A stretch of 64,000 nt of DNA, taken from positions 7,944,066-8,008,065 of the forward strand of contig NW_002060943.1 in NCBI RefSeq assembly GCF_000150275.1. The letters are read 5' to 3'. Source of the DNA: Trichoplax adhaerens. Lineage: Eukaryota; Animalia; Placozoa. The notes beneath the pieces are model-generated. The model searched no databases and was not told where the DNA came from. It saw only the letters and a list, made by a program, of their open reading frames with translations. Positions 6,278 to 58,999 of this stretch are shown here, piece after piece. A program made the translations under genes and the position numbers. Each line of letters begins with the position of its first letter. Positions within the stretch are counted from its first letter, which is position 1.

Positions 6278-9200
6278 TCAGAATGGTGAATGAAGTGTTC
6301 GTGAATCATTATTCGAGTTAGCACTTGAAGGAGAAGATTTTAACAACTGTTGCTGAGAAGCCTTAATAGACATTTCTGGACTTGCCGCTGGCGAGATATT
6401 GGTCACCTCGGTACCTAAGACACTATCTAATCCTTCATGTAAAGCTTCACAGGTTGACGCTACAGATTTTAAGGTAGCTTCTCGAAATTCTTCATATTTA
6501 GTTTGTACCTACAGGGAACCAGTAATATTCCATTAGAAATTAAATCGGAGTAGTCTTATATTATAAATTTACATTTCTAATGAGATTAAAATCAATTTTT
6601 TGGCCATTTTATTATATTGTTAAAAGCATTCAGAGAAGTACATTTAACTTATTTACCCTTGAAAGTAATCGAACAGCATCGTCTTTGTCTTGATCGCTTT
6701 TTCTCAATAAATTATCTGTAATGAAATTTATGAAATTCCCAATTAAAAAATTCTCTCAGCATACATTTATATTCCGTTGTTGGCAAAAATCTTGTATGAA
6801 AAGGCTAAAGGCCCTTTCTTGAAGAGTCGATATAATGAGAATAGTGGTATAACATTGCTTTATAATATTGATCAGCATCCAGGAATTGTGTATCTAGATA
6901 TTAATACAAATATCTACTAAAAACTACCTTACTAAAGGAGTTACCGTACTTGCACATGTCAAAATTTAATTCTATCAGAATTAAATCACAATGTGTTTCA
7001 ATATTGTACATAGCAGCTTCTACCGTCTATACTAATAAATACTAAGAAAAATATTTATCCTCAAATTCCCCATAATTGTTCTTTGCTCGTTGTAGCGAAT
7101 AACTTTCATTACCAGATATGTAATTTACGTTTACAAATTAAGGTACAACTAATTGTGATCGTCTCGTATATACAATATATGTATAATTAATTATGATATC
7201 TAATAATATATTACATTGCAATATAGTGCTACAACAGCTTGGCCATGCAAAATTTTACGATCAACTACCCCAAATTGACTATTGTACACTGATCACCATC
7301 ATTATGCTTTTAAATATACGTGTTAACAAGCTACAGCATATATTACCTAAATTGCCTTCCATCGTGTTTAAATCACCTTGAATTACGGTTAAAGCAGATT
7401 GCAACTTATCATTGGTTGTTTTCGATCTTGATGTATTATATCCTAATCTTAGCTAAAGTTAAAAGAAGAAATAATCAGGTTAATTATGATGTAAGGTAGG
7501 ATCAAACATTACTATCACAGCTTTATCGAAATCTTTAATATAAGAATATCTAATGTTAATCATCAATACTACAGATTTTAACCGGCATGAAATAGGATCA
7601 TATTAAAGTAAATTCGATATAAAACAGAATTAATATCTTACTTTAGGTTTATAGTAATTTACTGGTTCTTCTTCTTGATAAGTTAAGGGATGATGCAATG
7701 CATATTTTAGAGCTCGAACACTGCTTTGCATATCTGAGATTATGGCAAATAAAGCATAAAAATGATTAGTAAATAATTTAATTTCTTATCAAAGTTAAGC
7801 ATATCATATCAATCAGCAAGTTACCATTCTTCATTATATACGATGTAGTATATGATTTTAGTATAGATATAGCTAGTAATACTGTACCTTTTGGGAAATT
7901 ATTTTCTGGTTTATCATCATCAAGACCAGAAGCCAATTCCTCAAATCCCTTAAAAATAGAGGAATAACCAAGATCTCAATTAATATAAATTATCTTGAAT
8001 AGATTATATTATTGGGGTTATTTTTTTGCTCAAGGTTTTCTTTACTTTATATTTCTTTGGCAATTTCTTAGCTACTTCTCTTTGCTTTTCATGTGGAATA
8101 ATTTCCTCTTTAATATATTGGTCTTCAGCAGTCGATTTTTCTAGTGATGAAGTTAATGGACGATCGAAATCGTTTTGTTGCTATATCAAAAAATTACATG
8201 ATATATCAATATCTTCACCTAAATAAAAACTATTAATAATTGCATAATGATCCTTTCCAATAGGATAGCACCACTAAATATGAATGTATTTTAATCATGA
8301 TGATACGTTAAATAGGAGTAATATTAATAATTTGTCACCACTGCCCTTAAACTGAAACACTTAAATAATCGTTTAAATTTTCAATGCCCTTACATTATAA
8401 ACTAAATTATGATTATAGGATAGAGTAGCTAAAAATATACTGCCATGTTATGATCTACGGATAAAAAATATTCTTATTTATCTTCCATTACTAATCTTAG
8501 ATTTTATAAAAATTATAATTACATTGAATCAAATTGAAATAATTACTGCAACTAGCATGATACAATATCTGTTATATAGCTATCGACGATTGAAATAAAT
8601 AAATATTGAATAAATAAGGACTTGCTAATAGAGACTAAGAATCGTCGCTATCTAAAAATTTTAGACAAGAGCCAAATATCGTATCTGCTAATATGTCATA
8701 ATACCTGAGTTAAAAAGAAATTATTTTCATCATCATTGTCTTCTACTTCATTCATTTTCTCTTGTAAGATTTCATTAGGAATATCATCGATGATTTCAGT
8801 GTTACTACTAGGATGATCCGATGAAATAGTATCTTGTGTTGTAGGAAGAGGTTGTGAGAAATTGTAATATGGAGCTTCGATGCTAAGAGGATAGCGACGT
8901 TTAGGGATAGGAGGTAAGACATCCTGAACCTGTAATAATTCATTAATTGATAATCTAAATATCTTGAATCTACTACATCATAATAACGTTTTTACATCAT
9001 ATCCATGTACACCCCATAGCTATTCTTTTCTCTTATTGTCATACCTTGCGACGTTGATTGACGATAGGACGAGGTCGATATTTTTTCGATTTCCATTCGT
9101 CGTCAACATTGGTCCGAACTACATGAATCCCCCTTGCTTTGACTAACTCTTTTGTTAATAAAGGTGGATTGCCTTTTATTTTAGTCAATAGCGGATTACC

Positions 9201-12200
9201 ATAAATAACAAGTTCTTTAACTTGTGGATACTCAGCCAGTGACAATAAAGCTTCCTCTGTGGCAATCTACATCAAAATAATATTGCTGGTAAAAAGAAGT
9301 TCCAACAAATGCCTAAAAAATCGTACCTTAATATTCCATCTATGTATGATACATATATTACTACTCATAATGTCATTGTAGGTCCTTGTAATAAAAAATT
9401 AAAGACTATCCTGCATTATTTATTCAACTTACTGAATTATTAGCTACGCTTAATGCTTGCAAGTAGTAAAATGGGAAAGCGGTTTCATCATCAGATAGAG
9501 AGCCTAATGGCAATATTATAATTAAACGAAGGGAAGTCAGAAACTCTTCTCAAACAATATATTATAGAAGGGTTTTTAAAATATCGACGATAACTTGTTA
9601 GAAAAAGAGTTTACTTACTTGATATAATACTACTGCCTAAAATGCTCTCAACAGTGGGATGTCTTGGTAATTCTGTATGCTCAAAGGTTACATTACTGTC
9701 TGCGCGACTTTGAACGCTTTTACTAGAAAGTTTATGAAAATTTTTTAAATTGAAATAGGTTAAAATCATCATATAATATCAATTTTTATGATTTTTATAT
9801 AGCTGCATCATAACCCTTTAAAACTTCAATAAGTCACGCTCTTTTTAAGAAATACTTTCTCTAATATCTAATAGTTCTATTTCTATTTCGTTAGATTATG
9901 CGACTATTCCGGAACAAAAGCTCTCATTAATTAAGAGATACTATCTTTCATGTCTAATAATTATATTTTATGTCGTCGAGTTATACGAGTATCTCAGAAT
10001 AAAGCTCCTATTGAGAGACACTTTCTTTAATATCTAATGTCTTGTACTTCTATATCATTAAGTTATGTAATTATCTCCAAATACTTTCACTTAAAAACCA
10101 TTAGGAAATTTAAAAACATCAAAAGCTAGGTTAATAATGCCAATCGGTTGTAGTAATTTCTATTAATCTTCCTACTATTGCTGTTCCTATTCATTTATTC
10201 CACTGTATGTAATATACAACTAAAGCTGTTCTCTACAAATTCTTGTGATCGAAATAATTTCTTACGATAATTAACAAATAACTATATCGACTATCTTAGT
10301 ATATCGACTTACATCTCGTCATCATCGATTTTTCTTCCTTCTGAAATAATATTCGATCTAGTATATAATTAAATTATAAAATAAGTTAATGCTAGATAGA
10401 TATTACCATAACTGAACAATTCGAAAAAGGAATAATGTCTCTTAAAATTATACGAGAAGGAATCATACCTTTCACTACCAGCAGATATTGGAGCTACACT
10501 TCTACGTTTGCTTGGATTGGTAGTGCCCGATGATATTCTCATTTTTAACAGTAAGGATATCGATGGAACGCAAGTAATTTCATTGTTATCCAAATTTAGG
10601 TATCTTAGACTGAATTTACAATAATTTAAATATAATCAGAGGTATAATATAACGCGATGGTCATAAGATCATAACACTACTTTATTCAAACACTTAGGTA
10701 CTAATATCTTATATCAATTTCTACTTGGAAAGTTCTAACTTTCATTTGCAATATAGAATTATTCAATTTTGTACTTTTTTCAGTTCAAATAATATGAAGG
10801 CCTCAAAAATGACAATAATTCGTTAAAAATATATCCAATATCTTCTTGAAATGATATTGATATTGATATGAGTACATAGCCTTCTATATCTCATTCCTTA
10901 TTCGAAAATCTAGTTTATGTAATAAAATTATACATCTCTCGGCAAATTGAATAAATACTACTGTATACAGGATAGAACCTTGTTTTCCATAACATCGTTA
11001 ATATTTTTTCTTTACATAGTATCGATAGATCTTACTTTTTAAGTCCTGCTATCGGAAGGAAGCACGTCTCCGTTAATTGATTGCTATCCAAATATAAATA
11101 TTCTAACGACGGATATAGTGGTTTATGCTTTTCTTTCTCTTTCACATTGTCGGAGTGACTATAATGAAGAAAGAACATAAATAAAAGTTATCACTATCTT
11201 TCATAGTTTCAATTTACGTACTATATTATTTTATATATTCGTACAGCAGTATTAAGATAACTATCGCATCTACGGTTATTATTATGATTATTTTACCTTG
11301 GCGTTGATGTGGCAGAAAGCTCTAATGGTAAACTACCTAAATCATTCCCTAATAGAGATTAAAATTTATATTCTAATTAGTAAATCAGACCATAAGATCA
11401 AGCAATTTTAAGATTTGCCAGAGGCTAAATAAAATCATCATGTAGACTCTTTAAAGTACCTGTTAATTTTAATAATCTCAATTGCGGTAACGTTCCTAAA
11501 TTCAGTATATCATTTTTATTTAAGCAGTTATAGGATAAATCCAATGCCTAATGAACGATATTCAAATTATCATGATCATGTGAGACAATAGCACGATCGA
11601 TTATTTTTGATCAAATCACAATCTAAAACTGAATACGTTATTCAACTGACATGTAATTTGGTAAATTCGCCAGTATTAATCGATATGTCCGACAAATCAT
11701 TCAATTGCATCTCCAATTCTCTTAATTCTGGAAATGTTTTCAATTTTTCTAAAATGAATATGTAAAATATAGATTAGGAAGAATAAAGATATTCTGCTGT
11801 ACACGATTTTGCCAGAGATAACATTCGACATAACTTATATATATAAGACTATCGTATTTATATCTAAATACCTATAGGTAATTCATTCTCTCCAGCATTA
11901 ATGTGAACGACGTTATCAAACAGAGCTAAATCTTCCGAATTTACCTATATGTCATAATTTTGTACGTCTGATTTAGTAGATAATAAATTATTGATATTAT
12001 CTTCAAGTTAAAAATTACAATTCTTGAGTCTAAGATTATCACAAATAAGATTGAAATAACTTAATATAGTTTTAATTTAAAACATACCCCAGGGTATACT
12101 TACATCTGTTAATTGACAACCGCTGATGTTAATAGAACACAAATCAGATGGATCTTCAACTCCACAATGTTTTAGCTAAATGATGATCAAAAACAGAAAC

Positions 12201-13791
12201 GATTTAACAAAATGTAGACAACTAATTTATGCGATTTAAAGGGGGTGATTTACCAGGAAGAAACCATCCAGAACCTTGAGTGGACTATTCTTCACAGCTG
12301 GTGTATTCTTTGGATTTTTGATAATTTCTCCGCGATTATTGGATAACGTTCTTCCTTCCTCTTTCTTTTCGCCTTTCTCCGCACATAGAATAGCTTTAAA
12401 ATGGTTTTGCTGAGCTATATTATAAGCAATTAACCAAGCACCCCCTATGCAATCGATATCAATAATTATAATCAGAGAGGTGATATTGATTAAATTGCAG
12501 CCAATAACATGATAGATTGCAGTCAAGTTTACAAACACAAACACTAATAACCCACTTTCTTATCTTTAAGGTTTAGCCGTAATTAGGTAATGCTAGTAAA
12601 CATCTTACACATGATAATATAACTAACAGAAATTAATAATGAGTGTAGAATTCTCAGATTATTAAAGAGTAAAAGTTTTGTTAAAATGGATACTAGTTGA
12701 AGGTAGTAGAAAATAATGATTCTTTAATATTTTATCATATCAGAATTCATATACTTATTATCCGCAGAAATATTGAAAGAGTAGTCATATACTTCTCAAC
12801 AAAGAGCTACTTTTTATGGTTTATATTGGTATGATAATTATTTCAGTCTTAATTAAGCATATTTAGATCACTAGTAGCATATTAAGTAATCTGATGATAG
12901 TATGTGGAATAGATTTGTGCACTAAAACTCTTAATCAAATAGATACTTATTAAGAGTGGAAATAACTACAGTATCCGGTTGGGTTAGCGCAGAAAGCTAA
13001 GCCACAATCAGTGACTCGTATTATTACACAGAAATATCATTGCACTTACTATGATGCTTGTAAATCGAAATATTTTATCAAACAGTCACTAGTTCAAACG
13101 CAAACGCAATCAGTTTCAAGAATGATTGCCGTGCATATCAAGGCCATTTATATTATTGATATTGCAAGACTAGACCAATAATGTCGACATTAAAATGCTA
13201 GGAAGTCATGTGAAATAATGTTTGGTTATTTAAGTTTCTAATAAGTAGGCTTCAACTGAAAGTTTGAAGTGCTAGATTTAGGGTTGGCTTCTTTATCCAG
13301 AACATTGCTGTTAGCATTAAAATATTGAGACGTTATATGTAGACGGAAATATACGTAGCTGATTTTAGGATTAATTAAACATCTTGATCAAATAATATTG
13401 ACACGATAGTAGGAAATAAAGATATAGAAGAGCGTTTACTAGCTGAAATTATATGTAAATTCCTACTTTATAAGTATAAATATGGTAGACATATCGTAGT
13501 CATTAAGTTAATCATTTATTACTAGTTGGACGATGTCTATGAGTAATGTCTAACATGAAAAAAATTCTGTATGTAAAGAGATTTTATTTGATACCCATGA
13601 ATAGACTACCCAATGCCTACCATACCGAATCTATCCGTGTATAACAAAATTTTAACGTTTTAAAATATTAAGTAATCTCTATTTAATCATTTTAACTTAC
13701 CACTGCCGGTCTTGCTACCAAGCTTTCTATAATGCCGAATTGGGAAAGCATTAGTTATGTTGGAGATAGGAATATCGTTAATATTAGCCAT
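6278..13791 (-). CDS. XRRA1: X-ray radiation resistance-associated protein 1 (LRR protein), multi-exon
   Basis: Exon 1 (13701-13791) reads MANINDIPISNITNAFPIRHY. Later exons read GGAWLIAYN...VLDGFFL|LKHCGVEDPSDLCSINISG|EDLALFDNVVHINAGENELP|KTFPELRELEMQLN|LDLSYNCL...LGTLPQLRLLKLT|GNDLGSLP, resembling human XRRA1 (NCFPAR, LDQAFLLKHHCVRKPSDLCTINVSG, LGILPHLRVLLLTGNGLTSLP). The last exon ends ...RTLHSPF* at 6278. Confidence 0.85.
9850..10075. repeat. Degenerate ~83-bp tandem repeat (3 copies) in an XRRA1 intron
   Basis: A GARAYACTWTCTYTMATRTCTAAT-like unit recurs near 9850, 9935 and 10015. Confidence 0.6.
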
Positions 13792-14546: not shown

Positions 14547-17500
14547 ATGATAAGTAGGAGGAAAGTCAAAAAGAAAAGGATCAGGAAAAATGCTTTAAAT
14601 GGCAACAAGCCGGAACCATCTGTAAACTTAGGTAATTTGCTGACTACATATCAAAAGATATGCAAGGAATCATGTTGTCCTCCATCGCCAAAAGTCGTCA
14701 CTGACCTTCAAAAGTATATTAACCTTAATAAATATTTAGTTAGGGTAAGTATGAATTGAGTAACAATTTATGAACCTGTTATTTTATAGAAAGGATATCT
14801 CGATCATTGTCATTAACTGTAGAGCTTATTTAGACTGTAGAATCAGAGCAGTAATAAAATTTTTGATATCTTTACTTTAATGAAGTGATTTACATGATTA
14901 AGAATAGGGCAAAAGAAAATAGCTAACTTTCAAACAGAGTAATGCATTGGCTAACGATCTATAAATGGTCGAATAGACCTGCTAGCTTAAATAAAAGGCG
15001 TCAATACTACTTTATATTAAGTTGAAAGGCTTATTTGGAGACTAGAATAAGAGTTAATAGCATTACTTGCTACTTTTATTCGACTAAAGTGATTTAAGGA
15101 CTGTGATGATGGTACGCATAGTCAAGTATACATTATACGAGTATACTGTAGTTCTTAGAAAGAGCAGTAGTAGTGACAAACAATTTGACTTGTTAACTTG
15201 AAAAGAAGACATCTTGAAGACCTTTTAAATTACATAACATATCTAGAAAGCAACATTTCTACCTGTACAGTAATTTATTTTTAACTTTGTTCGATCGGAG
15301 AAGCATACATGCTTTTGTGATAGAAGTTATTANNNNNNNNNNNNNNNNNNNNNNNNNNNNNNNNNNNNNNNNNNNNNNNNNNTATCATAATCAACCTATA
15401 CTAAATTTTTAACTTATCTAAAGAGAGTCTGTAGATATGTTTTTGTAACTTTATTCGAATAGAGATATGCATGGTTATTATTAAGATAGAAATCATCTAA
15501 TCAAAACTAACCTCATAATACAGTATAATACTAGTCTCCAGTATCACCGATGTACTACTTAACAATTGATAGATCTAAAATTGACTCAATTAAACATCTT
15601 ATTATCCTTTTTTATTTTAAATAGTGCAGCTCAGTTACAGCATAGAACCTGTATTAGCATTTATAATTTTATTTGATTAAAGCCGTTTGCATAATTATAT
15701 GCGAGTACGGAATCAATTACTATAGTAAATCTTTATAAGAGCAGTATTTTGATTAAAAATTTACAGACCAGTCATATTATATAAAAGATATCATGATTAT
15801 TCATATTAAATTGTCAAGATCATTCTGATAATAGAATTAGTATTGCGACATAATTTTTGAATTTTATTGTAATTGCAATTTCGTTATCAATCTTTTAATC
15901 TTCTATAAAATGCTTCTTTTTACAGTTTATTATATATCCTGACGCAAATGTTAAGAATTATATGCTAGAACCACTGATCAAATCAATTAGAAATGTCCAT
16001 TACACATTTATTAAAGAATTATATTTATGGAAAATACCTCTTCAACATAGTCATACCGCAACTTTGGTAAGTCTGCTGCAGTTCATATGATTATTTTCAA
16101 TGTTCTTGCAACGCCACATCTTACAGGCTCCATATCGTCTCTTGACAAAATTACTGATCTCCGTCATGATCAATTTACTGTGCCATCATACATGTAATAA
16201 TCCTTTACACATATCCTAACAACAATTTTTATTTAGAAAATCGATAAATGTGAAATGCAAAGGTAGTGCACTAAAATATCCAATATGTAGTTGATCCAAT
16301 AACTATCTATTCTATTAGCGTATTTAAAGTAAGGATTTCTGATTCGATGTTTAATTAGTTAACCTCTTAGCCCATAAAAGATTTGCCTCAAAGAAGTAGT
16401 TTTTCAGAATGAATATAATACAAATTTGCTTACGCTTAATATGCAATGTTTCATCAAAGAGAGCATCCTAGATTAAGTTTATTGTAGCCCTACATCTTGC
16501 TACTGAAGGGTCGTCTAATATTATTAACGTATTACAAAATATATTTAGCTTTAGCTATTTTCTGTTTACTCTAATCGATTCCCAAATTTCTCTGTAAAAG
16601 GCTATAAACCTTAATCTTCTAAAAAGTCCAAGTAGCCAAGTTTAATTTGCATCTCCTGCATATTACATAGATATAGTAATAGTAAAAGACTATTACTCGG
16701 TCATTACAAAAATATTAGCTTGTAAGAATAGCTACATTTCTAGAAATAATAAGCCAGATTAACGAACATAGAAGGAGTAGCACAGGCCATTTTGTAAGTT
16801 TGCAATCATAGTAGTTAAACGGACGACTACAGTTTTAAATTCATGTTGAATTCTTTATTTAACATCCATATTAAGTTATGACTTGTAAATTATTTGTGCA
16901 TTCACTTTTTAAATATTTATATTATGATATCTGTATGTAGGCATTAATGATGGAAAAAGGAGACTATAAAATAACAACCCTAGAACTAGAGGATTGCGAT
17001 ATTGGTGCTTATTCTATAGCTCGATTATCAAAGTGAGTAAATTAGAAGTAGGATTAATGAAACGATTTAGTTTAATCTAAAGCTGGTATCTAATTGGAGC
17101 TCATACCGCCTGTATATGAATAAGTAGAAAACATAAAACTAAAAATCACTTCTCTTAATCGATCACTTTGTTTAGATCATTTCAGAGTAACACTCTAGTC
17201 AATCTGGTACTAGACTTCAATGAGTAAGTTCATTATGACAACTGCTAAATCATCGTGATTAATGCTCTCCACCTTGTAGAATAATGTAACAGATCTAATA
17301 AACGATTCTAGTAGTTATAACTGTCAATGAAACGATTAGTTCAAATGATTCTATGTGCATTTGCTTACAATTACTTAAAACAATCGGATAATTAATTTAC
17401 TGTTAATACAATCTAGCTCATAAGTTATTACGGTAAAGTGTAATAAAAATATGGATAAGATATTTTTACATTGAGTAATTGAGGATTAACTAAATGACTA

Positions 17501-19753
17501 TTGGTTTGTTTGATTATCGAACAGATTCGGAGATGAAGGCGTTGAAGGCCTATGTAATGGATTAAAGGGAAATTCGAGCTTGATTAAATTAAGCTTAAAT
17601 TACTGTGGATTGACTCATAAGAGTGGGAAAATTCTATCTAAAGCAATTTCATCCACAGCAATTAGGTAAATACGTATATTTAGTATTCGTAATAACATTT
17701 TCCATAAGATTATCATTAATAAATTCTCTAAAATATTTTAATTCATTTGCGATATTAGAGAGGTTTATCTAGACAGCAATAAGCTAGGACCTGAAGGGGT
17801 TCGAAGCTTAATTGAACCATTCGTTGAGCAGTCGATTATCGAAGTTATCGAAAGGCGGCAAGAAAAGGAAAAAAAAGAAGCAGAAGCTGCTAAACTAGCT
17901 GCAGAAGAAGGGACAAAGCGTCAGCAACAATTAATTAACGAAATGAAGAACGCAAGTAATACAGATAATCAATTTAAATAAATATTTATATAAATATTTA
18001 CATCAATGCTGATATACTGCAGAATGATCAGTACTCTTATGGATCATATGCTGTACAAGTTATTTGTTATATGCTTTATTTATCGCAACTATAGTAAATA
18101 GTAATTGTACTGATATATCTCGTGAAAATCTTTTATATCCAGCGCAAAAAATAATTTACAGCAAAGTAATACTAATCGTAACATCGCCACTATTGGGCTG
18201 CAAAAGTATCAAATTAATAGTGTATCTGCAACTTTATAGTACTGTATGCAGAAATTTTTTATATAAACTGTTATGAGATATCGTGCTCTTTGGTTGGATT
18301 AAACTCTTCAAGTTTTATTTTTAGATTTTAGTAATGAATCGTATCTCGAAGACTAAATAATTACAGTACTTCTTTATTTAATCATAGGTAATCCTCGTAA
18401 AAGCATAACATCAAGGAGTGCACTTTTACCGCTGGCGGCGAGAAAAAAGAAGAAGAAAAGGAAGAAAAAAGTAATTCCGGTACCTCCAGGCGTTGGAGCT
18501 TGGATTAGCAAATTGCACTTTGCAGACAACGGATTAGATCTTAGTCTATACAACGATACCTCTGCCCCTCTTGGAATTATGATGATGCTTAAAAAGTAAA
18601 TTTATAGAATAGATTAATTAATATATGTTAAATCATCTTTCGACTGAGAAAAGCTTAAAATATGTATAAGAAGACCTTATGAATCAAATCAATTAAACAG
18701 GAATTCTATCCTTTATTTTAATAACATTTAGTCCTTACGGTATCATGTAGATCCCCATATAACAAAATCGACAGACCCTAGTCTATCCTGTTATCGTTTA
18801 CTTCTTAAGTATATCTACAAATTCATTCAATAATATTTTTCTTCAATCTACGTTAATCGGAAGCGGCATTTAAGTAATTTAATATCGTAACAATAAGGCA
18901 ATTTTTTCACATTATAATGAGTAATATAAGATAGATGATTGTAAATTAGGACTCTACTATTCATTTACTAGCTATCTTCAAGAAGTTTATTGCTACCGAA
19001 CCTGTTATACATAGTGTGGTAAAAGTATACTCATTGCATGCAAAAGTCAACAGTTTTTTAATAATATTTATATAGTTATAATTCAAACTTATTTAATTAC
19101 GGTAAATTTTTCTATTATTTATTTGTACTAAAATTGAATAACAGTACAGTATTCTTAAAAAGGAATGATCAGATAACATTATTTTCTATCCCCAGCTTAA
19201 AATTATATCATTATATAACTCATGCACGATGAATCTATTATTAGACTATTATATCTTAGAAATTGTTTCGTTGAGAATGGATATTTTTGGTTTACTTAGA
19301 AAATTAATAAATAAAGTTTCATGCTTCGTAAATATTGATCATTTAAACTTTGATTTTCGATATTGGTCGCTAGTTTCATCGCCAATTCAACCTACCTTAC
19401 CGAATTAAATTTGGATGGAAATTTGATTGGTGATCTAGGCGGTTTGGAAATAAGAGATGGACTAGTTATGCGGAAAACAGGTACTTAAGCTAAAACTTAT
19501 ATTCGCAGTGAAACGTAAAATAAATAAACCATCGCAATATACTTATTAAAATAGTGATAATGACTAATTAACGTCAAATTGCGTTCATTTTTCTTGATAT
19601 ATATTCATATGAAATCTTTTATTCTTACAATTAGCACGTCTGCCACAATTAAAAATAACGATCGGTGTAAGAATGCAAGCCGAAACATTAACCAAAATTC
19701 TCAAGCTTTCAGGACGATTAAGTAAGAAAAGGAGACGGGTTAAAAAGAAATAG
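14547..19753 (+). CDS. Uncharacterised ribonuclease-inhibitor-type leucine-rich repeat protein with Lys/Arg-rich tracts (about 9 exons; start uncertain)
   Basis: In-phase GT-AG exons give MISRRKVKKK..., ITTLELEDCDIG, LVNLVLDFNE|FGDEGVEGLCNGLKGNSSLIKLSLNYCGLT, EVYLDSNKLGPEGV, KKKKKRKKK, LTELNLDGNLIGDLGG and ...SKKRRRVKKK* (TAG 19751-19753). An assembly gap lies in the first intron. Confidence 0.8.
15333..15382. other. Assembly gap (50 N)
   Basis: Run of N characters. Confidence 0.99.
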
Positions 19754-37902: not shown

Positions 37903-38825
37903 TTATAAACTATCCAATAAAGCAACATTTCCATGTTGATCGTGTAGTAATATTTCAAAGAATCTTAATCCTTCATAGAATTTGGAAGCTACAGTAATAT
38001 TAGGCGTCAGTTGATGACATTTAGGATTTCGATCGAAATATCTCAACAGTCTTCCACCATCGCTACTATCCGCATCATTAATGCTTATCAATGCCATGGG
38101 TAAGTGGCTACTTTTAAAAGTTTTGTGGGCGTCTTTAGTAAATCTACAAAGTTACAAAAATAGATCATGTTAAGATTGCTATCACAAATATTATCGATGA
38201 GTTATCATTACTTATTGTGTGTGGAATATCAATCTTTAGCTTATCAGTTTCATAAATAAGATAGAACAACAGATAAAGCTAGTACTGTATTGTACTGATC
38301 AAGATTGTCGGAGCTGATAGGTTCAATATTTACTACAGTATGCAGCGAGATTACGTTACAGAGTCATTTATCAGTAGCTATAGTATTGAGGAATACTGGC
38401 AGTTATTTTATGGCACTAATTATTCAATTAATTTTAACTTAATCAGTGAGTCTAATAGGGGTACATTACCCTTTACGCGAGACCAGAATGCCAATGGTAT
38501 TACGAGGTTCTCGATCAAGCGTTCCAATTAATGACCGGATGTGCAGTGGTCCACATGAAACTTTTAAATTTTTACAATCACCGACCACGTTCAATCTAGT
38601 TTTCTCCTTGTTTATACTCATATGCCAGTAGCCTCGAAAGTCGACACCTTTGTCATGAGCTCCACCACAGTGGTTTAAGTGGAAACCAAGTTGTCTTAAT
38701 ACATTAATAGTGTGCAATTCGTAATTACGTCCACGATGAGCTGCACTGCTACAGCTCCTAAAAGTAAATGATGTAGCTATTAAATTGCATTTCATTATTG
38801 TGCCAGAATGTAGTAATAACACCAT
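37903..38825 (-). CDS. RRG7/DUF2034-like PD-(D/E)XK (restriction-endonuclease-fold) protein, probably mitochondrial; 2 exons (38470-38825, 37903-38143)
   Basis: RGRNYELHTINVLRQLGFHLNHCGGAHDKGVDFRGYWHM...VVGDCK...GPLHIRSLIGTL...IGILVSRKG|FTKDAHKTFKSSHLPMALISI follows the RRG7 pattern G..(Y/F)E...GG..D.G.D..G.W...(Q/D)CK....P..REL.G. The N-terminus lacks acidic residues. Confidence 0.8.
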
Positions 38826-46100: not shown

Positions 46101-49100
46101 CGCTTCATGACACACGCACTTCTCGTTCAAGTAAGTTAGAAAGTAGAGAAATATTATAGAAAAAGATTCTTATACTTATTTAACATATGGTTTTCTAAAA
46201 TTTTTAGTTAATCAACACTTCAAAATTGGCGCTGGAGCTCGTTTAAGTTGCCATCTCTTGCTGAGGCTATTAGAGAAACCATCGCATGAGGTCAATAGTT
46301 ACGTAGACTATAATAGCGGAGAACTGGTTTTGAAGTCATGGGATAGAAGCTTACTATCTACTTGGCATCATACCTTAGGTTTGTGGTTAATCGTTTTTGA
46401 GTTCCTTTTTAAGCTAGTATTATGATTGCAATTAGAGCTGTAACATATTATAATTATAATTGATATAATTTCCTAGATTTGAACTACATCTACATTGTTT
46501 TGAAGACTATGGCAGCTATGGTTGATTCTAATAAAGATAATAATAGCAAAGACATATTTAATTTTACGACAAATATGGGAATATTAGATGAACCAGATAC
46601 TACTTGCGCTAATCTTGCGTTAAACGTTCTAAAATCAATTTGTGCTCAGCCTTTAATTCAACAACATGTTCTTTGTAATCTGCGAGACTGTTGTTCTAAG
46701 GAATTTCTATTAGATTCAATGTTGACAAAGCGTCAGGTAAAAACCAAGCTATTGATGACGGTCATATTTCAGATCGATACTTACGAGTAGCTTTTCTTTT
46801 CATTTTATCAGGCCATCTACCTACAATATCTGCTGTGCTGTGCTGACAGTATTACTTTCGACCCTTCTGATATTGATACTGATATTAATAAAGAAGATGT
46901 GCTCAATCTATTAAAGGTATATTTATATATTTATGAATTAGTTATAGGGTATTGATAGTTCCAGTATGATATAAATGGGATGATTTACCAAATTCGTTTA
47001 TAGGATATTAATCAATGGTCACTAAGAACAACTTGGCTTGAGATCGAATTACATATCAAGCTCTGTACGCGCAATGAAGTAAGTCTGCGTCCCTTATAGC
47101 TTAATTAATATCCACGCTATTGTCTAAATTATTTTCTTCGGCTTATTTAACAAGGAGCGGACGCGAATTATAGACAACTTAGCGGAAGCAATTATAAAAG
47201 TATACCAAACTTCCAATATCACTAAGTGCGCTTCTAGATCAGACATGTCGGCCATCTTATCACAAGAAGGAAATATCTCTTTAATTGCTCCTTTCGTAGC
47301 GAAATTATCCAATTTTGCTCAGGGTCATATTCTAAAAGCAGCTGGAGAAGTATTGGAAAGATCAAAATGGTGGTTACCGGACGATGACAAGTAAGAAATC
47401 ATTTTCATTTCGATAGCCTTTATACTTTGTATAAGCGTTGACTAAACATTTTGATTGTGCTTATATAATTTAGTCCCTGTACTTTGAACCAAAAGCCTTT
47501 CCTTTCTCTAATATTAACTTGCTTACGCTGCCAAGATGAACATAAAAGGTGCTTTTTATCTTCCATTCAAAAGCAATTTCAACAATTCTTGCGTTCGCCG
47601 ATTGAGGTATTGAAAGTTAAAAATCTTACAAACTTATACAATTTGTACTCTTTATTTGATAGTATAATAGCAAATTACGCATAGATAATTTTTAGTATTA
47701 ATAGTTAAACGATTGATGCAATTATTTTAGGAAAGAATGCCTGATAATCTTAAACAGAGAGAATTCTTAAACGATGCCATTCATTTGCGCCTTAGTTTGG
47801 TAAGATCTGATTCTATTCTTATCGCTTTTAATTATTTGAGAAGACAGTAAGAATGAAGGGCAACTGGCAAATTTTTTTATAGATCGGAGCTGTATTCGAT
47901 ACTATATTACGTGATCTAACGCTATGCAAAGATTGGATACGCCTAATGTTGCAATTTATAGCCTCCGGAACAATAGATCTATTCAGCGAAGACAAGTAGG
48001 AAAAATATCTTTAAATTCTTTAGTGAAGCTAATTTTCAATTGCTTTTGATACTTCAATCTTTACAAATTTGTCTTTAGACAACTGCTGAGTTCTATCTTG
48101 GATATGCTATCAGTATTAATAAGTACCTTGAACGTATCAGAAAGTGTACCGTCAATGAGTGATGAGGCTAGAAAAGTAAATGCATCGCTGGTTAAGAAAT
48201 TCAGGGTAAGTTTTCTTCTTAGATATCGTATTAAATTTGTTCGTTATAAGGCTGTAATCATAGCATTTACGAGGGAATTGTGTAAATATGCAGAAGGAGT
48301 TGGATGGAATTAATTCCCCTGTGGTGAGGGAATGTAAGAAATTGTTTTCGCTTGAAACTCCGCCAGTTAATGTTATTTCCGTTTCGAGTGAAACTGACGA
48401 TACTTGCTATCAAAATGAGTTGTTTAAGGTAAATAAAGTATAGAACCTTACTTATGATGATAGAATTATCGTTTGCAATTGTTATGCGTAAGAAATTGTT
48501 ATTTATAGAATTACATATTTTTGGTTTAGACGGTCGCAGTGGATCATTCTGTGCATGTAAATAATTGGGACATTCTAGAAAGTACCAAATTCTCTTCTCC
48601 TACTTTATGGTCATACTTTGCTGGTGTTAAAGTTGATAGGAAGCCATTGACGTACGAAAATCAGTTTTTTTCGACTATGCAACATAGTCATATGATAGAA
48701 GAATCTCCAGTCTTTTACTTGCCAACTAAAGAATTAGAAATTAATCCGTTACCCTCTGCTAAACCAACTACAAGTAAAACTGTAAAAAATCGTACCAGTA
48801 ATGCCAAGACAGCTGTACCAAAGGAAATAACGCCTCCTTCATCTGTAATTAAACCAGAGGTAAAAGCAACAAAAGCTGCTCCTGGTAAGCGTCAGCGTAG
48901 GCGTTCTACGATTAAAGAAAAAGAAGAAAAGCGCACTACACCCTCTACTATTACGGTCACGAATACGATTTCGAAGACTACTGCAGCTGATTCTATGCGT
49001 GATAGACAATATCTTGCTATTGGATCATCGTCGGGAACTGCTCGTAGCAATGCCACACAAAATAATGAAGGCTTTCAATCACTAATTTCCAAGCAAGTGA

Positions 49101-49624
49101 AAGTATCTCAACCTGTTTCATCTTATACTATTTCTGATCGATCTCAATCTGAAACTAGAGCCCCTAGAAAGAATTCGGGGACTCAATTAAGAGATTTATT
49201 GGGGGATATGCCAACTGCGATGGTGTATCCTGAAGCTCCAAATGTTGGCCGTTCTCAAATGCAAACAACGATGGTAACTTCTGCGTCTGATTATTCCAGC
49301 TTTCAATCAATGAATAATAATACTATTGCTAATATAAATCAGGGAATAGACAGTAGTTTTAGTGATACATTAAATATAGCAAGTCACTCAGATAACTTAT
49401 CTCAACGATCGCTGCAGCAAGGTATGACATCGTCATTAATGGACAATAATTCGATGGTTGATAATCAGATTTCAACCAATTTTATGAGTACTCGCATGCC
49501 AGTTAATCGTTCTGCCGGCAGGATGTCTCAGAATTTAATTAACTCTAATAGCCAGCAATCACGATCTAATGACGTTTTACGTCGACTTAATAAGTTTAAT
49601 GGTCATCAATCTCATTATCGTTAG
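40166..49624 (+). CDS. MED12: Mediator subunit 12 (kinase module), multi-exon
   Basis: The N-terminus [31 protein letters not shown]|[12 protein letters not shown]...[17 protein letters not shown]|IP...KEEVF..L....[11 protein letters not shown] matches MED12. Further matches include [91 protein letters not shown] and NNWDILE. The last exon is a low-complexity stretch ending at 49624. Confidence 0.95.
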
Positions 49625-50372: not shown

Positions 50373-53300
50373 TTAGTACTTTTTTGTAATCATTAATGTA
50401 GTTAATAATCTTTCCATGGTGTGACTGCAGTAACAAGGACAACTGATAATTTTCATTTGATTTTCAAGTTTTTCCATTTCAGTCACTTTATCTGTTGATA
50501 AATCATTAAAAATGAATAAACTATAAGAAACATTTTGCGAGTCATTATCTATTAGTAATAAGTCTATGAAGAGAGGAGTAGTACTGAAATTATTCTATCT
50601 TTTAACCTTTTTTGTACAAAAGACTTATAGTAAAGAAAGACCGCATAATTTACGGTATTAACTTAAATAGGAATATTATATTAATTGAAGAAAGACAAAG
50701 ATGATTGTGGGAATGATTAGCTTACCTTTTGTAGTTATACCAAGGTATTTAAATTGGCCTGTTAAATCTAACAAGTTGCCGTATTGGAAATCATCTAAAG
50801 TTAACAGTTTTAAGTTGAATTTCCTGAAGCTTGCGTTTCCTTTCCATGAATGAATTTCAAATATTTCTGTTTGAGTATTTTGGATAGCTAATTGAACTTT
50901 ACAGTTGTATTGGGATGGAAAAGAAATATATCTGTAGACGCGATAAATGACCGCTGATGGTGGTGTTTTAGTGGATATAGGTGTAGTTGAAACAGTGGTA
51001 GTCGTAGACTGAGGGTCTTTAATTTCTATTGATAATATTATATTGAGCCAAAAAGAATTAAATATTCTATAGTGATTTGCTCTATTCATTCATCAACTTA
51101 ATGTTTACTTGGTCAAATAGAAATCAGTCAAATTATAGCGAAGTGGGAAAACGTTAAATTAATATATTTTTACCAGAGCAAATCTTGCAGCAATGACCAT
51201 CTATTATTTTCGGGTTATCACATGGATATATTGTAGGGCAAATTACAGGATTACACGTCACTTTACCATTCTAACCGTGAGATAATTTTCACCATTATTA
51301 CTAATTTATAGGCCGATAAAGAAAAGAGCATTTTTTTAATCGATACTATACGAACTTGGCAGTGGCAGTCTATACAGTTCATTGGACCAAGAGGAGGTAG
51401 AACTGGATGCCAGGTTTGTCCATGTCTCTTCGTTAGACCATCAAATTTACAACCTGAAGATAGCAAGAATAATCAAACTGCGTTATGGATAATAAAATTA
51501 ATAAGTTAAAATATAATTACAAGATATGATATTAATATTATGGAACACTACTAGTATACAATTAAACAATAATGATGTATCATATCTAGTTCTAACTCTT
51601 TTTCGGTTTATCTGTAGTTGCCATTTGCAAACTCGGTTTTGCAGTTTGAAACAAATTTGAGGTTTCATTGCTAGGTACTATAGTTGAATTTGGAGATTCT
51701 AGAGAGAACAAAAGGATTCAAGAATTACTCTTTTCTTGCAATAAAGTACTACGATAGTCAATAAAGTAATTTATTTTATTCATTTGTCTAAAAATACGCA
51801 GTATATATCTTATCAAAAATGAACTGATTAAGAAATGGAAACAAAATTACCTTCATACGTTGTGACAGAGCTTTTATCGCAAACTGAACAGCAACCACCT
51901 GATGAAAATGATGACTGACTATTGCAGTTGAGCTCTGAGCACCGAATTTTTCGACAATTAACTTCACCTTTCTGAAAGGCAATACGGTACCGTTAGCCTT
52001 AAACTCTTTTATGAAATTAAAGCCTTCTATACACTTATACTATCATAAATGTATACTATTTTAGAAGAATATTACTTAATGTACTTATGTGGCTAAAATT
52101 GTTTACTGACGTTGCAAACACATTCATAACATGGGGAATATCCAAATGGCTGGAAATATGGATGCCAAGGCGAGTTTTTAATATAACTGTTGCCCATATT
52201 AGCACATGGACTCATTTCTGTCTCTAAAAGCATAAAAAATGTAATTTAAAGATGTTGTAGGAACAGATACTTATACCAACATTCTATCTATTTCGACGGC
52301 AATTGTAAATTGGGTTGGTATGAATCGATCTTTAGACTATAACATTTTTATCGATTATGTTAAATGTGATCAGCAAGATTTTCTCTTACTAAAACTTTCA
52401 TCTTTACACACTGGACAGCAGGTATTATTATTTTGAATTTGATTTTTGCACTTTAAAATTGGGCATTTTCGAGGAGAACAAAAAACTCCACCACTCTAAT
52501 TGATATCAAAATACAAATATTTACCAAATTCGCTCTATACTATTTCACTATATCCTTACTCTATGTTATAACTGTGAGTAAGACAAAAACAATATCGTAA
52601 ATAGGAGCAAGAATACATCTAACATATTCAAATGATTCAGTAGATTTAATAATTTACTTGGATAATTATAGTAATTATTCTTATATCTCGAAAATCTATA
52701 ATGGAAATTACGATAGTGCAGGACATTTAGGGTAGATTTTGTGATATATAACATAGAGATACTGTAGTAATAGAGCAGTGCATATTGATTTACTAATCAT
52801 AAGGTTAGTTACTATTACATCTTCAAAATAGAAATATTACTGAAATCATGACAGAGCAATATGTATATACGATTTGCTATTATATTTTGAAGATACTTGC
52901 ATTATAAAAATCACGATATAGTAATGTATATATAAATTTAATAATTTGTTGCGGGGCTTATTGCTATATTTTGAAGATATTACTGTATAAGAATTAATAT
53001 AGAGAATTTTACGCTAATTACCAACAAATGCAAAATATTTATTGAATTCACCCCATTACATTTTATTGTAATGTATATCATAATTTTGATCGGAAGTGAA
53101 ACGGTTATGTAAATAACCCATAAATAAAACTATGTCTATGATACCCATATGTGTAATCTAGTAAGATTAATAATTTACTAGGGGTAGTTATTACTCTATT
53201 TTAAGAATATTATAAGAATTGTAATATTTCCAATAGATTAAATGACTTACTAGATAATTTTATCTTGAAAATATTTAAACTACAGAAACTATGATTAATA

Positions 53301-56300
53301 TTGCGTAAGATATGAATGATCATCGCTGTAAATTAGTTCTCTATCGATGGATATATTAAGAATCTTGATAATTTTGGGGTTGAATGATTTACTAGAAAAG
53401 CTATTAATGTATATTTGAATATAGGAGTAGTATGATAGATTAGCGCTCATGAATTTAAAAATTTATCAAGACAGTTGTATCCATTTATTTTGGTAGATTG
53501 ACTGATAATACAAAATAGCGACTGATGCTATTTAATAATACTGATGAAATTCTAACAGTTTAATCGATTTAATAATTAATTGGGATAGGAACTACTCCAT
53601 TTATTTTTTATTGGAAAATAAGCATTAAAAAATCATAATGGGGTTCATTAATGGTGGTTCCATTAATTAATTATAGTTGCTAATCCTCATACGTATATAT
53701 GATACAAACTGAATACGACGATATCAATTGCTAATCTAGTCAATAGCAAAATTTATCAGTAAGAAAGCCAAATTACCACTTAGGAAACCTATAAATGAAT
53801 CTCTCCATTATCGAATTGCCTGCGATATTGATATAAAGAACTGAAACTCAGGAACTAAATTGTGACAACTTTAAATACTTACGATGCAATTGCATTCGAT
53901 ACACTGACGATCACGAGTAGCTGTAGGCAATTTTCTTTTATCTGTAGAAAGCCAACATTGTCCACTGTTATAATCTTTGCCTAAGAAATGGCAAGTGGGT
54001 TGTTGGTAGCTGGCAGGTGGAGATGATGTAGCAGCCATGACCTCTGGGTCATCTATGAAATGCGTATAGAATTTACATTAATCATTGCATAATTTTATTT
54101 TACAATTATCATACGTTGTGCATATATCATTGCTGCAGCAGATCCTATAATGTATTCTTACATAATTTAGCCGAGAGCAAAAGAGATTTGTCGTAGAAAA
54201 AATTATATAAAATCATTCGCCAATATTGTAGAGTATTTTTTTAACGTTATTGTTCTGTTAAGTTCGAGTATATTAAAAATTGATGATAAGATTTATTACA
54301 GGATTGTGGCAAAGTAATTAAATAAGCATGTTTTAGATACCTTTATAAATTGGCCATCATCTACTCGTATAACAAATAGTAGAATATTTTTATTCCAAAA
54401 TCGAATATATCAAGGTATAGAATTATTATATAGAATGTATTGTTAGTGTTATTAAGGAAATATTTGTTTTATGCTTAATTCAAGCAAGGAGGAAATTAAT
54501 ATTAAAAAATCGGTCTCGATGTTTAGGAAGAAAGCTGCAATGGAGTAATTTTAGCCGACACGATCTGAATACATTAAAGCGAGATCCCATGTTAGGGCTT
54601 TACGTCGATAAAGTATTACTATAGTCGGATATTTATTACAAGACATAGTTGGTATGATCATAGTTTTAATTTAAAAAGGGGAAAGCCAAGGAATGAAGTT
54701 ACCACGCAGAATAGCCAACTCATGACCAAGGCTCGTGATTTAAGTGTTATGAGTCTCTTTTAGGGTTCTATATTGACCGAATATTACTACTAGTAGTAAA
54801 ATACTTTATAGCCGATTAAAATTTCTTACTAATAAATTACATCCAGTACATTTTTTACTCCCATGTAGTGCAATATTAGGATCGTTCTAAAAGGGAAAAA
54901 ATGATGAATTGACTGCAGGAATTAATGATAGGTGCCATGAAAAATGATCAACTGCTCTATAAAGGCTGTAGCTATAGCAATGCCTGTTTAACGATTGTAG
55001 AATGACTATGCTAGCAGTAAGAGGCTTTCATTAAAGATTTTTCAATTTTTCAAGGAACTCATACAATTCTTAAATCCAATAAAGAGTAACGTTAGTAATA
55101 TTCAATCATCTCAACTGCTTAAATGAAGAGTTTACTATCAAAATTATCGACGACAGTGATTCAAGAATTAGCATCTGCGAAGATTACAGTTTTGATGAGA
55201 ATAGAATCCCAATCAACTGATATAAGTTTGTTCTCTATGACGTAAATAAATCGACCATAGACTACTACAGTAGTAGAGTATTTTAATTTCAATTTTAGTT
55301 TGTCTAGGCTATTTTTAACTTTTGTAGACAATAATATTGAAATTATTTATGAATTTGATAACTAAAGTGAGAGGAAATAAAAATCAAATTCATTAAGAGA
55401 AATCACAATAATTGCCGCACTAGGCTACAGCAAAGAAGTAGAAAAGATTTAAACAAACACCAACATATCCATCTTCCGCTGGCTAAACAAAATGGGTGAC
55501 CTTTTTGATGTATTTATATTTAATCCTGCTAGTCTATCTATCTTGGCATAGGCAGTAGATTTTCAACATTCATAATGAAATCACTGTATTACTTATGGCA
55601 AAGTGGTGCAAATAAAAGGACACTGGTGATAGTCGTTGATATGGAAGTTAGCATATTCAATTACCGACAATATCTATTATTAGATTGTATCATTATTGAC
55701 TTTATGGCTTCGCCTTTATTCTTAACTTAATACCCATAACGTAATTATTTGAGTTGATATTTTATTCTACTATTTTATCTGCCATAAAATTATCAAGACA
55801 GGACAGCTAAAGTATTCCTTCCGTATGGTATTAAGGAGAATTTATGCTCAATTCTTTCCCATATTACGCCTAATGAAGAATCTTGTTGTAGCTATTTCTC
55901 TGCTCTCCTCTTCCATTTTATGGTTGTACATATCAAAATAATGTTGATTTTCACCGTCTCGACACTACGAACTGGTTGACAACTCAATATGAATTAGCAA
56001 TTAGAAGTTAGCAATTAGATCAGAAAGCTGTGTGAAAAGGGTAAATTAAGAAATAAGATTCTTAGAATTCAATCGTGTAAGACTCTATAGAGAAGCTGAA
56101 GGAATGGGCAAAGAGATTAGAAAGAAGAAAATCAATATAAAGGCAGCCTATAATAACTTTTTGTCAAACGGTGCTAGGATAGATTTATCATACATGAGAT
56201 GGAAGTGAATAGAGTATAAACTATTAACGTGATCATAATAAAGAGTAAGTTACGATCAATCAATGAGCATATTCGTTTGACTGAGAATAAATGTGGACAT

Positions 56301-58999
56301 AGGATCAAATGAATCCTTTTCCCCTTTTTCTCTTTCTATGTATCTTAACTTCAATGACAGGAAGGTGAATAAAAGTGAATCGAAGAAACTATCCAGTTCA
56401 TTTAAACACTTAGTCTAATGTAACAACATACATACCTGGACATTGTGGGCAGCAACGGCCTGGTAAGACTGAAGGATTTTGGCATGTTGGCTTTTCGCAT
56501 TTGTTTTTCAGATCGACACATTCCACTGCTCCATTCTATAGGCATATGAAAGAGATTATAATTAAATCATCTTAAGCTCCCATGAATCTCTCTATTCATA
56601 GAGAAATAGCTTATCCAATGGATTAACTAGGGGTGAAAAGGGCATTCTTATTGGATCAGTGATCTAACACGAATGGCCATGATAAAAATATTATTCAATT
56701 CCTATGAATTTTTTTCTATCATTGTCGAGGACGATTATATCTATCTTTAACTTCAGCAAAGAATAAATTGAAAAGACGAAATAAGTTAATGAAGTTATTT
56801 CAGTGTTAGAAGCAGTAACCATTTGACTACTAAGATTGTCTCCATTCGCTCTTCCATGAACCACTAGAAGAAAACCTATTCTTCTAGTGGTCCATGGCTC
56901 TTTTCAATGGCTTGATTTAGGTGATATATGCATATAATTTATTCACAGCAGGGATCAACATGATTTCTGATGAATTTGTGACCCAAAATCAACATGTTAT
57001 TGTACATTGATTAGCTGCTAGAGGTATAAATCATTTACAGTAGATATTAATTTTTAGGTTCAATGTCGCTTTGGTTTATGGCTTAAAACCGATATCTACA
57101 CATGTAGCGAATTTTTCGACATTATAATGGAGACATTTTTTAAAAAACTATTTCGAAGTGCAATTTTACAATAGTGCTATCGATAGGAGATTGTATTGAT
57201 AATCATCTGAAAAGTAATACTTCGTGGAATGATTAAAATTAACTCTGTAATTTGCTTTTAGCTCTATTTGTGTACTTCTAAATATCCTACCGATTTGCAT
57301 GTACAAAGAATACAGTATGAAATTCCATAAGGTTGGAGGTTAGGATGCCATTGTTGACCGCAGTGATAGCGATCTTTGCCAAATTGGCAGCCACAAGATC
57401 TATAAGCTGAATGAGTAAAAATAGAATAGCAAATCGCAATTAGATATCAACTTGGGATAAGTAGCCAATAAATACAGCCATAGCAATAGACTAAGGTAAA
57501 AATAATAAAATGTGGGTATACTTTAATCCTACAAAATCAATTTATTTTTGATTGTGGTGCTTAATTAAAGATTAAAAATAAATCGGAATGGGTTTAAAGG
57601 ATACGAAAGGAGTAAAATTGGAATAGTAGAATAAAATCTAATATGAAAATCCATTCTTTACTCCCTAGGTGTTGAAAAATGGATACGAGATACTATCTTT
57701 GATCGTCATGGCGCAAGTTGAGAGAATTTTTTATAGTTATTATAGGCGTGAAAGACTATTAAATCATAGTAGTCACCAATTAACTCTATCAAATGCCAAT
57801 ATTGACCATAATGAAGTTTTTCTAGAACGGATAAACGTTTTTAAATAATATAAAGTAATCCGAGATGAATTTGATATAGGTTAGACTGTACGGTACAGTC
57901 ATATGTTATCCACATACTGTATAGGCCAAAAATTAATTTTCAAAGAAGTATTTTTCACTAGGTATATGGTATCTAACTATATACTAACGAATAGAAAACT
58001 TCTTATTGGACTATTATGACAGTACGGAATGAAATTTCTACACTAAGGACTTTTACAAGACAGATATCAAACAGATATAACTTGTCCTAGGCATTGAAGA
58101 TCTCATAAACTACAATTCTTTATTTAAACCTTTACTACGCATTTCTATAGCATTAGCTTTATATAAAAAGTGAGGCACTATGGACTTTTTAAGATAGAAA
58201 GTGCACTGTATTGCCCAAATATTAAGTAGATAAAACTTATCTTAAGCATTAAAATCCTCATAAACTACATTTCTTTTTTAAACGTTCACTACGCATATCT
58301 ACAGCATTAGCCCTATATCAAAGAGAGGCATATGACTTTTTCAAGACAGAAAGTGCTTTACATTGCCTAAATATTAAATAGATATAATTTATCTCACGCA
58401 TTAAAATCTTTATAAAGCTAGAATTCTTTTTAAACGTTTACTACGCATATCTATAACATTAGCCCGGTATGAAAGTTAAGCATATAAATAAGATATACCC
58501 GTAGTAAAGTCAGATACTTATACAGTTATGTACGCGTAGGTACTAACCTGATGCCGAAGAGATAGACAGCCAATAAAACAGTATGATGTAGTGATAGTAG
58601 CTAGATTTTTTAATTTAGAAATCAAACTTTAGCTCATTCTATAATGTTATGCGTTAATTTCAGTTTTTAAATTTACTATAAATTAATAAAAATATAAAAC
58701 ATGCATGATCACTACATAAATTTAAGTAAGAAAATAGACAAACAGAATTAAAGCTGTTCAAAAAATGATAATATTGGCTAATGGCAATATAAATCGAACA
58801 TCGAAAACATGAACTATCTATATTAAATCTCTAATTCTTTCCATTCCCTAATATCTTAAAGTACAGCAATTTTCGTTTTAAAAGTTAGCGATATTTTATT
58901 CCTATTGCTAACCATCTAGATATTATCTAAGAATGGATTCTTGGATAAGTTATAAGAGGATAAATATCGTAATAAAAATATATACCGTGCTAGCAACAT
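50373..58999 (-). CDS. CHRDL: Secreted chordin-like BMP antagonist: signal peptide, 4 VWC/CR domains and a CHRDL1/2-type C-terminal domain (13 exons)
   Basis: Phase-consistent exons: 58986-58999, 58548-58600, 57291-57406, 56436-56535, 53883-54052, 52390-52495, 52111-52223, 51851-51971, 51597-51698, 51356-51453, 51174-51270, 50726-51025, 50373-50491. Signal peptide MLARYYHYIILFYWLSISSASA. VWC1 CQFG...WHPNLQPYG..CILCTC...CCPQC; VWC2 CHFLG...CIECNC...CCPVC; VWC3 WHPYFQPFG..CYECVC...CCSVC; VWC4 CKFDG...WHPVLPPLG..CIDCHC...CCKIC. Confidence 0.9.
58040..58475. repeat. ~153-bp tandem repeat (about 2.7 copies) in an intron of the chordin-like gene
   Basis: The unit ATAAA(G)CTA...TTTAAAC.TT.ACTACGCAT.TCTA.A.CATTAGC starts at ~58105, ~58260 and ~58412. 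Confidence 0.88.

Follow-up and report, generated by a model that had tools for sequence, protein, structure and literature searches.

Linkage of XRRA1, POLD3 and a chordin-like gene in the placozoan Trichoplax adhaerens, a probable remnant of an ancestral gene linkage

Background

In both human and chicken, the gene for DNA polymerase delta subunit 3 (POLD3) belongs to a small neighbourhood with the order KCNE3-POLD3-CHRDL2-XRRA1-SPCS2, located beside NEU3 (PMC3179935), and the gene lists of chicken and horse agree with this grouping. POLD3 adjoins chordin-like2 in vertebrates, amphioxus, Saccoglossus, Asterias, Lingula and a termite (PMC12425909, Fig. 2; Front Cell Dev Biol 2025). Here we describe a stretch of 64,000 nucleotides from the genome of the placozoan Trichoplax adhaerens (contig NW_002060943.1, positions 7,944,066 to 8,008,065), hereafter the window, in which XRRA1, POLD3 and a gene coding for four VWC (CR) domains, the chordin-like gene, are found at a short distance from each other. 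The initial annotation of this DNA had pointed to the human linkage of POLD3, CHRDL2 and XRRA1, which is indeed stated in PMC3179935. The POLD3/chordin-like2 neighbourhood has already been published for deuterostomes and protostomes, and the new element here would be the placozoan instance; in the literature we found no paper extending the pair to a non-bilaterian or adding XRRA1 to it.

The likeness with the bilaterian pair of PMC12425909 is that of a polymerase delta subunit gene near a bone morphogenetic protein (BMP) antagonist gene made only of CR/VWC domains. In bilaterians the two genes are adjacent and the antagonist has three VWC domains, whereas in the window they are 19.6 kb apart, with MCM7, an RRG7-family gene and MED12 between them, and the antagonist has four. 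XRRA1 goes unmentioned in the text of that paper and is present here. For Trichoplax, DuBuc, Ryan and Martindale published in 2019 a chordin-like gene that codes for four CR domains and lacks CHD (PMC6501881), a description that fits the gene in the window. These authors used synteny to tie it to the Nematostella Chordin scaffold, through four shared genes that are not named, and a 2024 review (PMC11226491) groups the placozoan gene with Kielin. The other systems to be compared are the blocks of Irimia et al. 2012 (PMC3514665), which resemble the locus in consisting of unrelated genes, a developmental regulator plus housekeeping bystanders, linked for a very long time.

Results and discussion

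A POLD3/chordin-like gene linkage in a placozoan

XRRA1, POLD3 and the chordin-like gene are all encoded on the minus strand and span about 50 kb and eight gene positions:

7642..12445, minus strand, XRRA1 orthologue; limits from exon matches, the 3' end may extend to about 6281, the limit given by the initial annotation
27308..31043, minus strand, POLD3 (DNA polymerase delta subunit 3); Pfam CDC27, E 1e-8
50679..57446, minus strand, chordin-like gene with four VWC (CR) domains; Pfam VWC

All three could be identified, so that their placement by the initial annotation within about 53 kb was correct. XRRA1 is 14.9 kb and three genes away from POLD3, and the chordin-like gene lies 19.6 kb and four positions beyond POLD3. 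The identities, positions and copy numbers of these genes are directly observed, as is the adjacency of XRRA1 and chrdl2 in one teleost; the adjacency of POLD3 and CHRDL2 across Bilateria is taken from PMC12425909, while a common ancestry of the linkage and its passive retention are our inference. The explanation that we favour, with modest confidence, is that the linkage of POLD3 with a chordin-family gene predates the split of placozoans and bilaterians, that XRRA1 and LIPT2 belonged to the same ancestral segment, and that the arrangement was passively retained. POLD3 and a chordin-family BMP-antagonist gene would already have been close before the two lineages split, and the pair would have stayed within four gene positions in the placozoan and as direct neighbours in bilaterians. 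XRRA1 and LIPT2 would have been located in the same segment of the ancestral chromosome, perhaps also near the pair. The slow reshuffling of placozoan and vertebrate genomes would have allowed the linkage to survive, and, once the genome had been duplicated in vertebrates, the loss of genes would have left the survivors side by side on 11q13.4. The locus would be a remnant of ancestral gene linkage and not a demonstrated functional unit.

Identity of XRRA1 and POLD3

Family-specific matches clearly identify both XRRA1 and POLD3, each of which is present as a single copy. Protein searches were run one exon at a time. The XRRA1 exon at 9042-9266 (minus strand), searched against 1.84 billion representative proteins, gave 61 matches, mostly to proteins of 450-830 amino acids and aligned at about residues 280-490. 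Ten of these matches were looked up. Nine are animal proteins, of which five are named X-ray radiation resistance-associated protein 1 (Danio, Lissotriton, Nematostella, Branchiostoma and Haliotis) and four have no NCBI name (Ephydatia, Owenia, Dallia and Synaphobranchus); the remaining one is an unnamed Logan sequence. By tblastn, 14 orthologues matched the successive exons of the locus in collinear order between 12445 and 7642 (query residues about 31-697). The XRRA1 locus is single in the genome, here an assembly of 105.6 Mb in 1414 contigs in which the window occupies 7.94-8.01 Mb of a contig of 13.26 Mb. A contig of 538 bp from a metagenome (ENA ERZ27264358 k141_1598796) contains an XRRA1 exon with 79% protein identity to that of the window and probably comes from another placozoan lineage in the environmental sample.

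The last exon of POLD3 (27308-27538) matches positions 390-442 of Pfam CDC27 over the curated cut-off, and the C-terminal end of its product, QSSLTSFF, is PIP-box-like. This is the sole CDC27 locus of the genome. The first coding exon begins near 31043 and the N-terminal exon reads MGVDPALLDNIDQFVKDEGRIV; it gave no match in PDB, being too short for that search.

Architecture and affinities of the chordin-like gene

The four VWC domains of the chordin-like gene (51157-57446) are all split by an intron at the same position of the domain, around position 26 of Pfam VWC, and each is thus found as two halves:

57267-57446 and 56413-56535, minus strand, halves of VWC1
53874-54077 and 52373-52495, minus strand, halves of VWC2
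52096-52245 and 51831-51992, minus strand, halves of VWC3
51266-51472 and 51157-51270, minus strand, halves of VWC4
50679-51089, minus strand, tail open reading frame (ORF) of the gene

Six of the eight halves have Pfam VWC matches and the cysteine pattern is visible. VWC1 and VWC2 are separated by an intron of 2.3 kb. In lumpfish, chrdl2 codes for 433 amino acids with three VWC domains plus CHRDL_1_2_C, and its last VWC is unsplit (L009:22271-22486). The last VWC of the chordin-like gene matches best the last VWC of this lumpfish chrdl2, in a comparison set without any Chordin.

The gene shares with Chordin the number of CR domains, four, but the CHRD domain that Chordin has between CR1 and CR2 is undetectable here: CHRD (PF07452) gave nothing in the window or in the genome at E <= 1. 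It resembles CHRDL1/2 in having no CHRD and differs from them in having four VWC domains instead of three. CHRDL_1_2_C (PF19548) had no match in the tail ORF or anywhere in the genome, a search of low power in that the control exon of lumpfish chrdl2 itself reached only E 0.006. When the tail ORF was compared with the tail of lumpfish chrdl2, 208 of 2000 shuffles scored as high, which is not significant, and in ESM Atlas it found nothing. With no Pfam match, no ESM Atlas match and a shuffle test without significance, a CHRDL-type tail at 50679-51089 is unsupported.

The initial annotation had also suggested that an ancient linkage would support CHRDL1/2 over CHRD. This argument is reasonable but it is not decisive, given the four VWC domains, the lack of a detectable CHRDL C-terminal domain and the Chordin synteny of DuBuc and colleagues. 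Their link goes to cnidarian Chordin through four unnamed genes and ours to bilaterian CHRDL2 through POLD3; for both to hold, Chordin and CHRDL would have to derive from a single ancestral locus.

The wider neighbourhood

A fourth member of the human neighbourhood was found outside the window. LIPT2, which adjoins POLD3 on its other side in human and chicken, is represented by the only lipB gene of the genome, located on the same contig and leftward of the window by 165 kb (G000:C1414:7778430-7779232; L011:4308-5359, minus strand). LIPT2, POLD3, the chordin-like gene and XRRA1 are therefore on one contig and within 230 kb, with about 30 other genes interspersed. Compared with the vertebrate block KCNE3-LIPT2-POLD3-CHRDL2-(RNF169)-XRRA1-SPCS2-NEU3, four members are present here in a different order (KCNE3 and RNF169 were not searched for).

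The 170 kb from LIPT2 to the window contain genes of the WW-domain, UDPGT and JAB/MPN families, TCTP, two PRDX5-type genes, a Rap GTPase, COG6, an ABC transporter, a cathepsin, LHFPL, a WWE gene, eIF4E and PCCA. The two PRDX5-type (Redoxin) genes are about 100 kb from each other (L015:3942-4427 and L025:8871-9449). The human counterparts of PCCA, COG6, TCTP, DOCK9/10/11, MED12, PRDX5 and others are located at 13q, 11q13, Xq, 3q and 2q36-37, regions commonly regarded as paralogous to each other through the genome duplications of vertebrates. The human map positions of the genes in these 230 kb fit one pre-duplication linkage group. The surroundings look like ordinary synteny at the level of the linkage group, with a local order largely unlike human.

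The edges of the window are occupied by PCCA (1-1200, continuing to the left of the window at L027:8739-8987) and by a DOCK9/10/11-type gene (60992-64000). Human PCCA and DOCK9 are both at 13q32.3, and their placozoan counterparts at opposite edges would add another linkage of the human type to the window.

XRRA1 in other animals

For the comparison with other species the anchor was XRRA1 only, and 10 kb were read on each side, a radius that would miss the 14.9 kb linkage of XRRA1 and POLD3 found in the window itself. In lumpfish, XRRA1 directly adjoins a sialidase gene on one side and chrdl2, in convergent orientation, on the other. The ORFs of the window compared by tblastn with this lumpfish locus matched the XRRA1 exons and also VWC domains. 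Nine invertebrate XRRA1 loci were read in the same way, those of Lingula and Saccoglossus and the following:

OW051993.1, about 16.09 Mb, XRRA1 locus of Nematostella
CM071752.1, about 24.36 Mb, XRRA1 locus of Pocillopora
CM110744.1, about 6.98 Mb, XRRA1 locus of Ephydatia
CM027641.1, about 21.40 Mb, XRRA1 locus of Branchiostoma
AP043576.1, about 6.85 Mb, XRRA1 locus of Ciona
LR699104.1, about 9.67 Mb, XRRA1 locus of Asterias
KB199651.1, about 4.77 Mb, XRRA1 locus of Lottia

In Ephydatia, Ciona and Lottia the genes on both sides of XRRA1 belong to other Pfam families, so that in these three animals XRRA1 is clearly not adjacent to the POLD3/chordin pair. Some of the products flanking XRRA1 in Lingula and Pocillopora have no Pfam match, and adjacency to the pair is unlikely there. 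In Saccoglossus (L007:28682-33325) and Asterias (L010:30457-31086) a protein kinase gene is located directly downstream of XRRA1 on the opposite strand. XRRA1 and this kinase may be a pair conserved in ambulacrarians; the kinase does not match the one found in the window.

Inherited linkage or chance

Several observations weigh against an inherited linkage. The three genes are not contiguous, since five others are interspersed among them, and XRRA1 is found on the opposite side of POLD3 relative to human. The chordin-like gene is VWC-only and its orthology to CHRDL2, as opposed to Chordin or Kielin, is not established. SPCS2, RPS3 and the PGM-family genes are on other contigs and no clear sialidase was found in the genome, which rules out the wider 11q13.4 block. 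No CDC27 or VWC gene was found within 10 kb of XRRA1 in the nine invertebrates, a comparison of low power, and the window ORFs compared by tblastn with eight of these loci (Lottia excluded) recovered the XRRA1 exons only. In addition, the linkage of XRRA1 hangs on an unverified scaffold join across an assembly gap (see below), and the number of comparable triples to be expected by chance is not small.

To quantify the latter, the null model placed genes at random within a linkage group of an assumed size of 300-1200 genes, and was solved analytically and by simulation. Under this null, the probability that three named genes fall within eight positions is ~1e-4 to 1.4e-3. About 18,000 local triples exist in human to choose from, and some 2-25 chance triples are then expected genome-wide; for linkage groups of about 480 genes the figure is about 10. 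Found post hoc, the triple of XRRA1, POLD3 and the chordin-like gene is not significant on its own. The proximity could then be a coincidence inside a shared ancestral linkage group, with the local order fully scrambled and the case picked up by genome-wide scanning. Such an explanation would agree with a gene order and a set of intervening genes unlike those of human, with the lack of POLD3 or VWC genes near XRRA1 in the invertebrates, and with the position of the PRDX5-type genes, which are closer to XRRA1 than LIPT2 is even though their human counterpart PRDX5, at 11q13.1, lies about 10 Mb from POLD3. It accounts less well for the pair. POLD3 and the chordin-like gene, at a rank distance of four, have p ~0.7-2.7% under the same null, and this value carries no multiple-testing penalty because the POLD3/CHRDL2 pair was named beforehand, as a Bilateria-wide one, by an independent paper (PMC12425909). 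It also leaves aside that a fourth human neighbour, LIPT2, is within about 20 genes. We consider chance alone a serious though less likely rival, and retain passive inheritance of the linkage as the preferred explanation.

The proposal of the initial annotation, a tight linkage kept since near the base of animals, can be maintained in part. The linkage is real and the POLD3/chordin-like pairing plausibly reflects shared ancestry; its tightness does not hold, with five genes intervening and an order unlike that of human.

The search for RPS3 gave one further observation. The strongest Ribosomal_S3_C match of the genome (G000:C927:1580-1828) is in an uninterrupted frame of 314 amino acids on a small contig, possibly of non-animal (bacterial) origin.

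Intervening genes and the assembly gap

The window has a guanine plus cytosine content of about 30% and its genes are compact and intron-rich. The interval between XRRA1 and POLD3 contains an RNI-type leucine-rich repeat (LRR) gene and a RYK-like receptor tyrosine kinase gene, and that between POLD3 and the chordin-like gene contains MCM7, an RRG7/DUF2034 gene and MED12:

14547..19485, plus strand, intervening gene 1, RNI-type LRR gene; LRR_6 matches at 17514-17666 and 19354-19485
15333..15382, no strand, assembly gap of 50 N between XRRA1 and POLD3, non-coding
24249..26063, plus strand, intervening gene 2, receptor tyrosine kinase domain, RYK-like; Pfam PK_Tyr_Ser-Thr, with RYK second-best in PDB
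33932..36603, plus strand, intervening gene 3, MCM7; best PDB matches frog, fly and human MCM7, E 1e-22; Pfam MCM
37906..38849, minus strand, intervening gene 4, RRG7/DUF2034 nuclease-fold gene; Pfam RRG7, E 5e-15
40500..49621, plus strand, intervening gene 5, MED12; Pfam Med12-LCEWAV in two exons, E 7e-17 and 5e-13

The kinase has HKD in place of HRD and GDKAL in place of DFG, features of a RYK-like pseudokinase. The RRG7/DUF2034 gene, between MCM7 and MED12, has a weak match to Mrr_cat as well. MCM7 and POLD3, which both act in DNA replication, are arranged head-to-head with 2.9 kb between them (31043-33932), and may share a bidirectional promoter region. A GTACA-type microsatellite is found between them at 31371-31484.

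The gap at 15333-15382 has 1-kb flanks that show no mutual overlap (best local score 14), and the sequence on its left occurs only once in the genome. On the plus strand, the candidate exons closest to it finish near 14750 (donor GTAAGT) and begin again near 15926 (acceptor TTTTTACAG), and no plausible coding exon abuts the gap, which indicates that it falls within an intron or between genes and that no reading frame is affected. Judging from the splice-like signals on both sides, the LRR gene may span the gap, yet the simplest exon junction is out of frame. Should the join be wrong, the damage would be confined to the XRRA1 part of the linkage, since the gap has POLD3 and the chordin-like gene together on its right-hand side.

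A genomic regulatory block?

The initial annotation had suggested a genomic regulatory block in which housekeeping bystander genes carry enhancers for the BMP antagonist. In such a block, enhancers of the chordin-like gene would be located in or beyond POLD3 and XRRA1, a break in the linkage would disturb the regulation of the antagonist, and the linkage would have been kept by selection since early animals. POLD3 and CHRDL2 are adjacent in animals as distant as a termite and a brachiopod (PMC12425909), a persistence that usually marks a constraint of this kind, genome-wide association study (GWAS) and expression quantitative trait locus (eQTL) signals at the human POLD3/CHRDL2 locus have been assigned to CHRDL2 (PMC7844411, PMC10167361), and the placozoan gene is spatially patterned (PMC6501881). 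Support for a block comes only from outside the window, from this persistence in bilaterians and from the human eQTL and GWAS signals. Inside the window the picture is different. Eight genes are packed in 50 kb without any gene desert, so that the gene density is high instead of low, and the largest non-coding spans are the introns of the chordin-like gene itself, of 2.3 and 1.4 kb. The housekeeping genes MCM7 and MED12 stand between POLD3 and the supposed target, unlike in bilaterians, and the three genes are all encoded on one strand, in contrast to the convergent XRRA1 and chrdl2 of lumpfish. The high gene density also sets the window apart from the blocks of Irimia et al. 2012 (PMC3514665), in whose main text POLD3, CHRDL and XRRA1 are not named; these genes are likewise absent from the supplementary files searched for PMC8851819 and PMC9023564. 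A regulatory block appears unlikely to us on this balance. It is equally improbable, in our opinion, that cis-regulatory constraint has kept the POLD3/chordin-family pair together, and XRRA1 and LIPT2 close to it, from a time before placozoans and bilaterians diverged. Passive retention of an ancestral linkage continues to be our preferred explanation.

Conclusions

Apart from what it may say about the POLD3/chordin-like pair, the locus is a typical case of synteny conservation between placozoans and vertebrates, and by itself it brings in no new mechanism. Were cis-regulatory constraint to be responsible, this would be one of the most ancient regulatory blocks centred on a BMP antagonist, and the placozoan four-CR gene, cnidarian Chordin and bilaterian CHRDL2 would all come from one ancestral locus. 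If the linkage is ancestral, as we favour, the published bilaterian microsynteny would be pushed back by one major node. A shared POLD3 neighbourhood would provide a kind of evidence independent of sequence similarity that ties the placozoan gene, about whose orthology the published papers disagree, to the bilaterian CHRDL2 locus.

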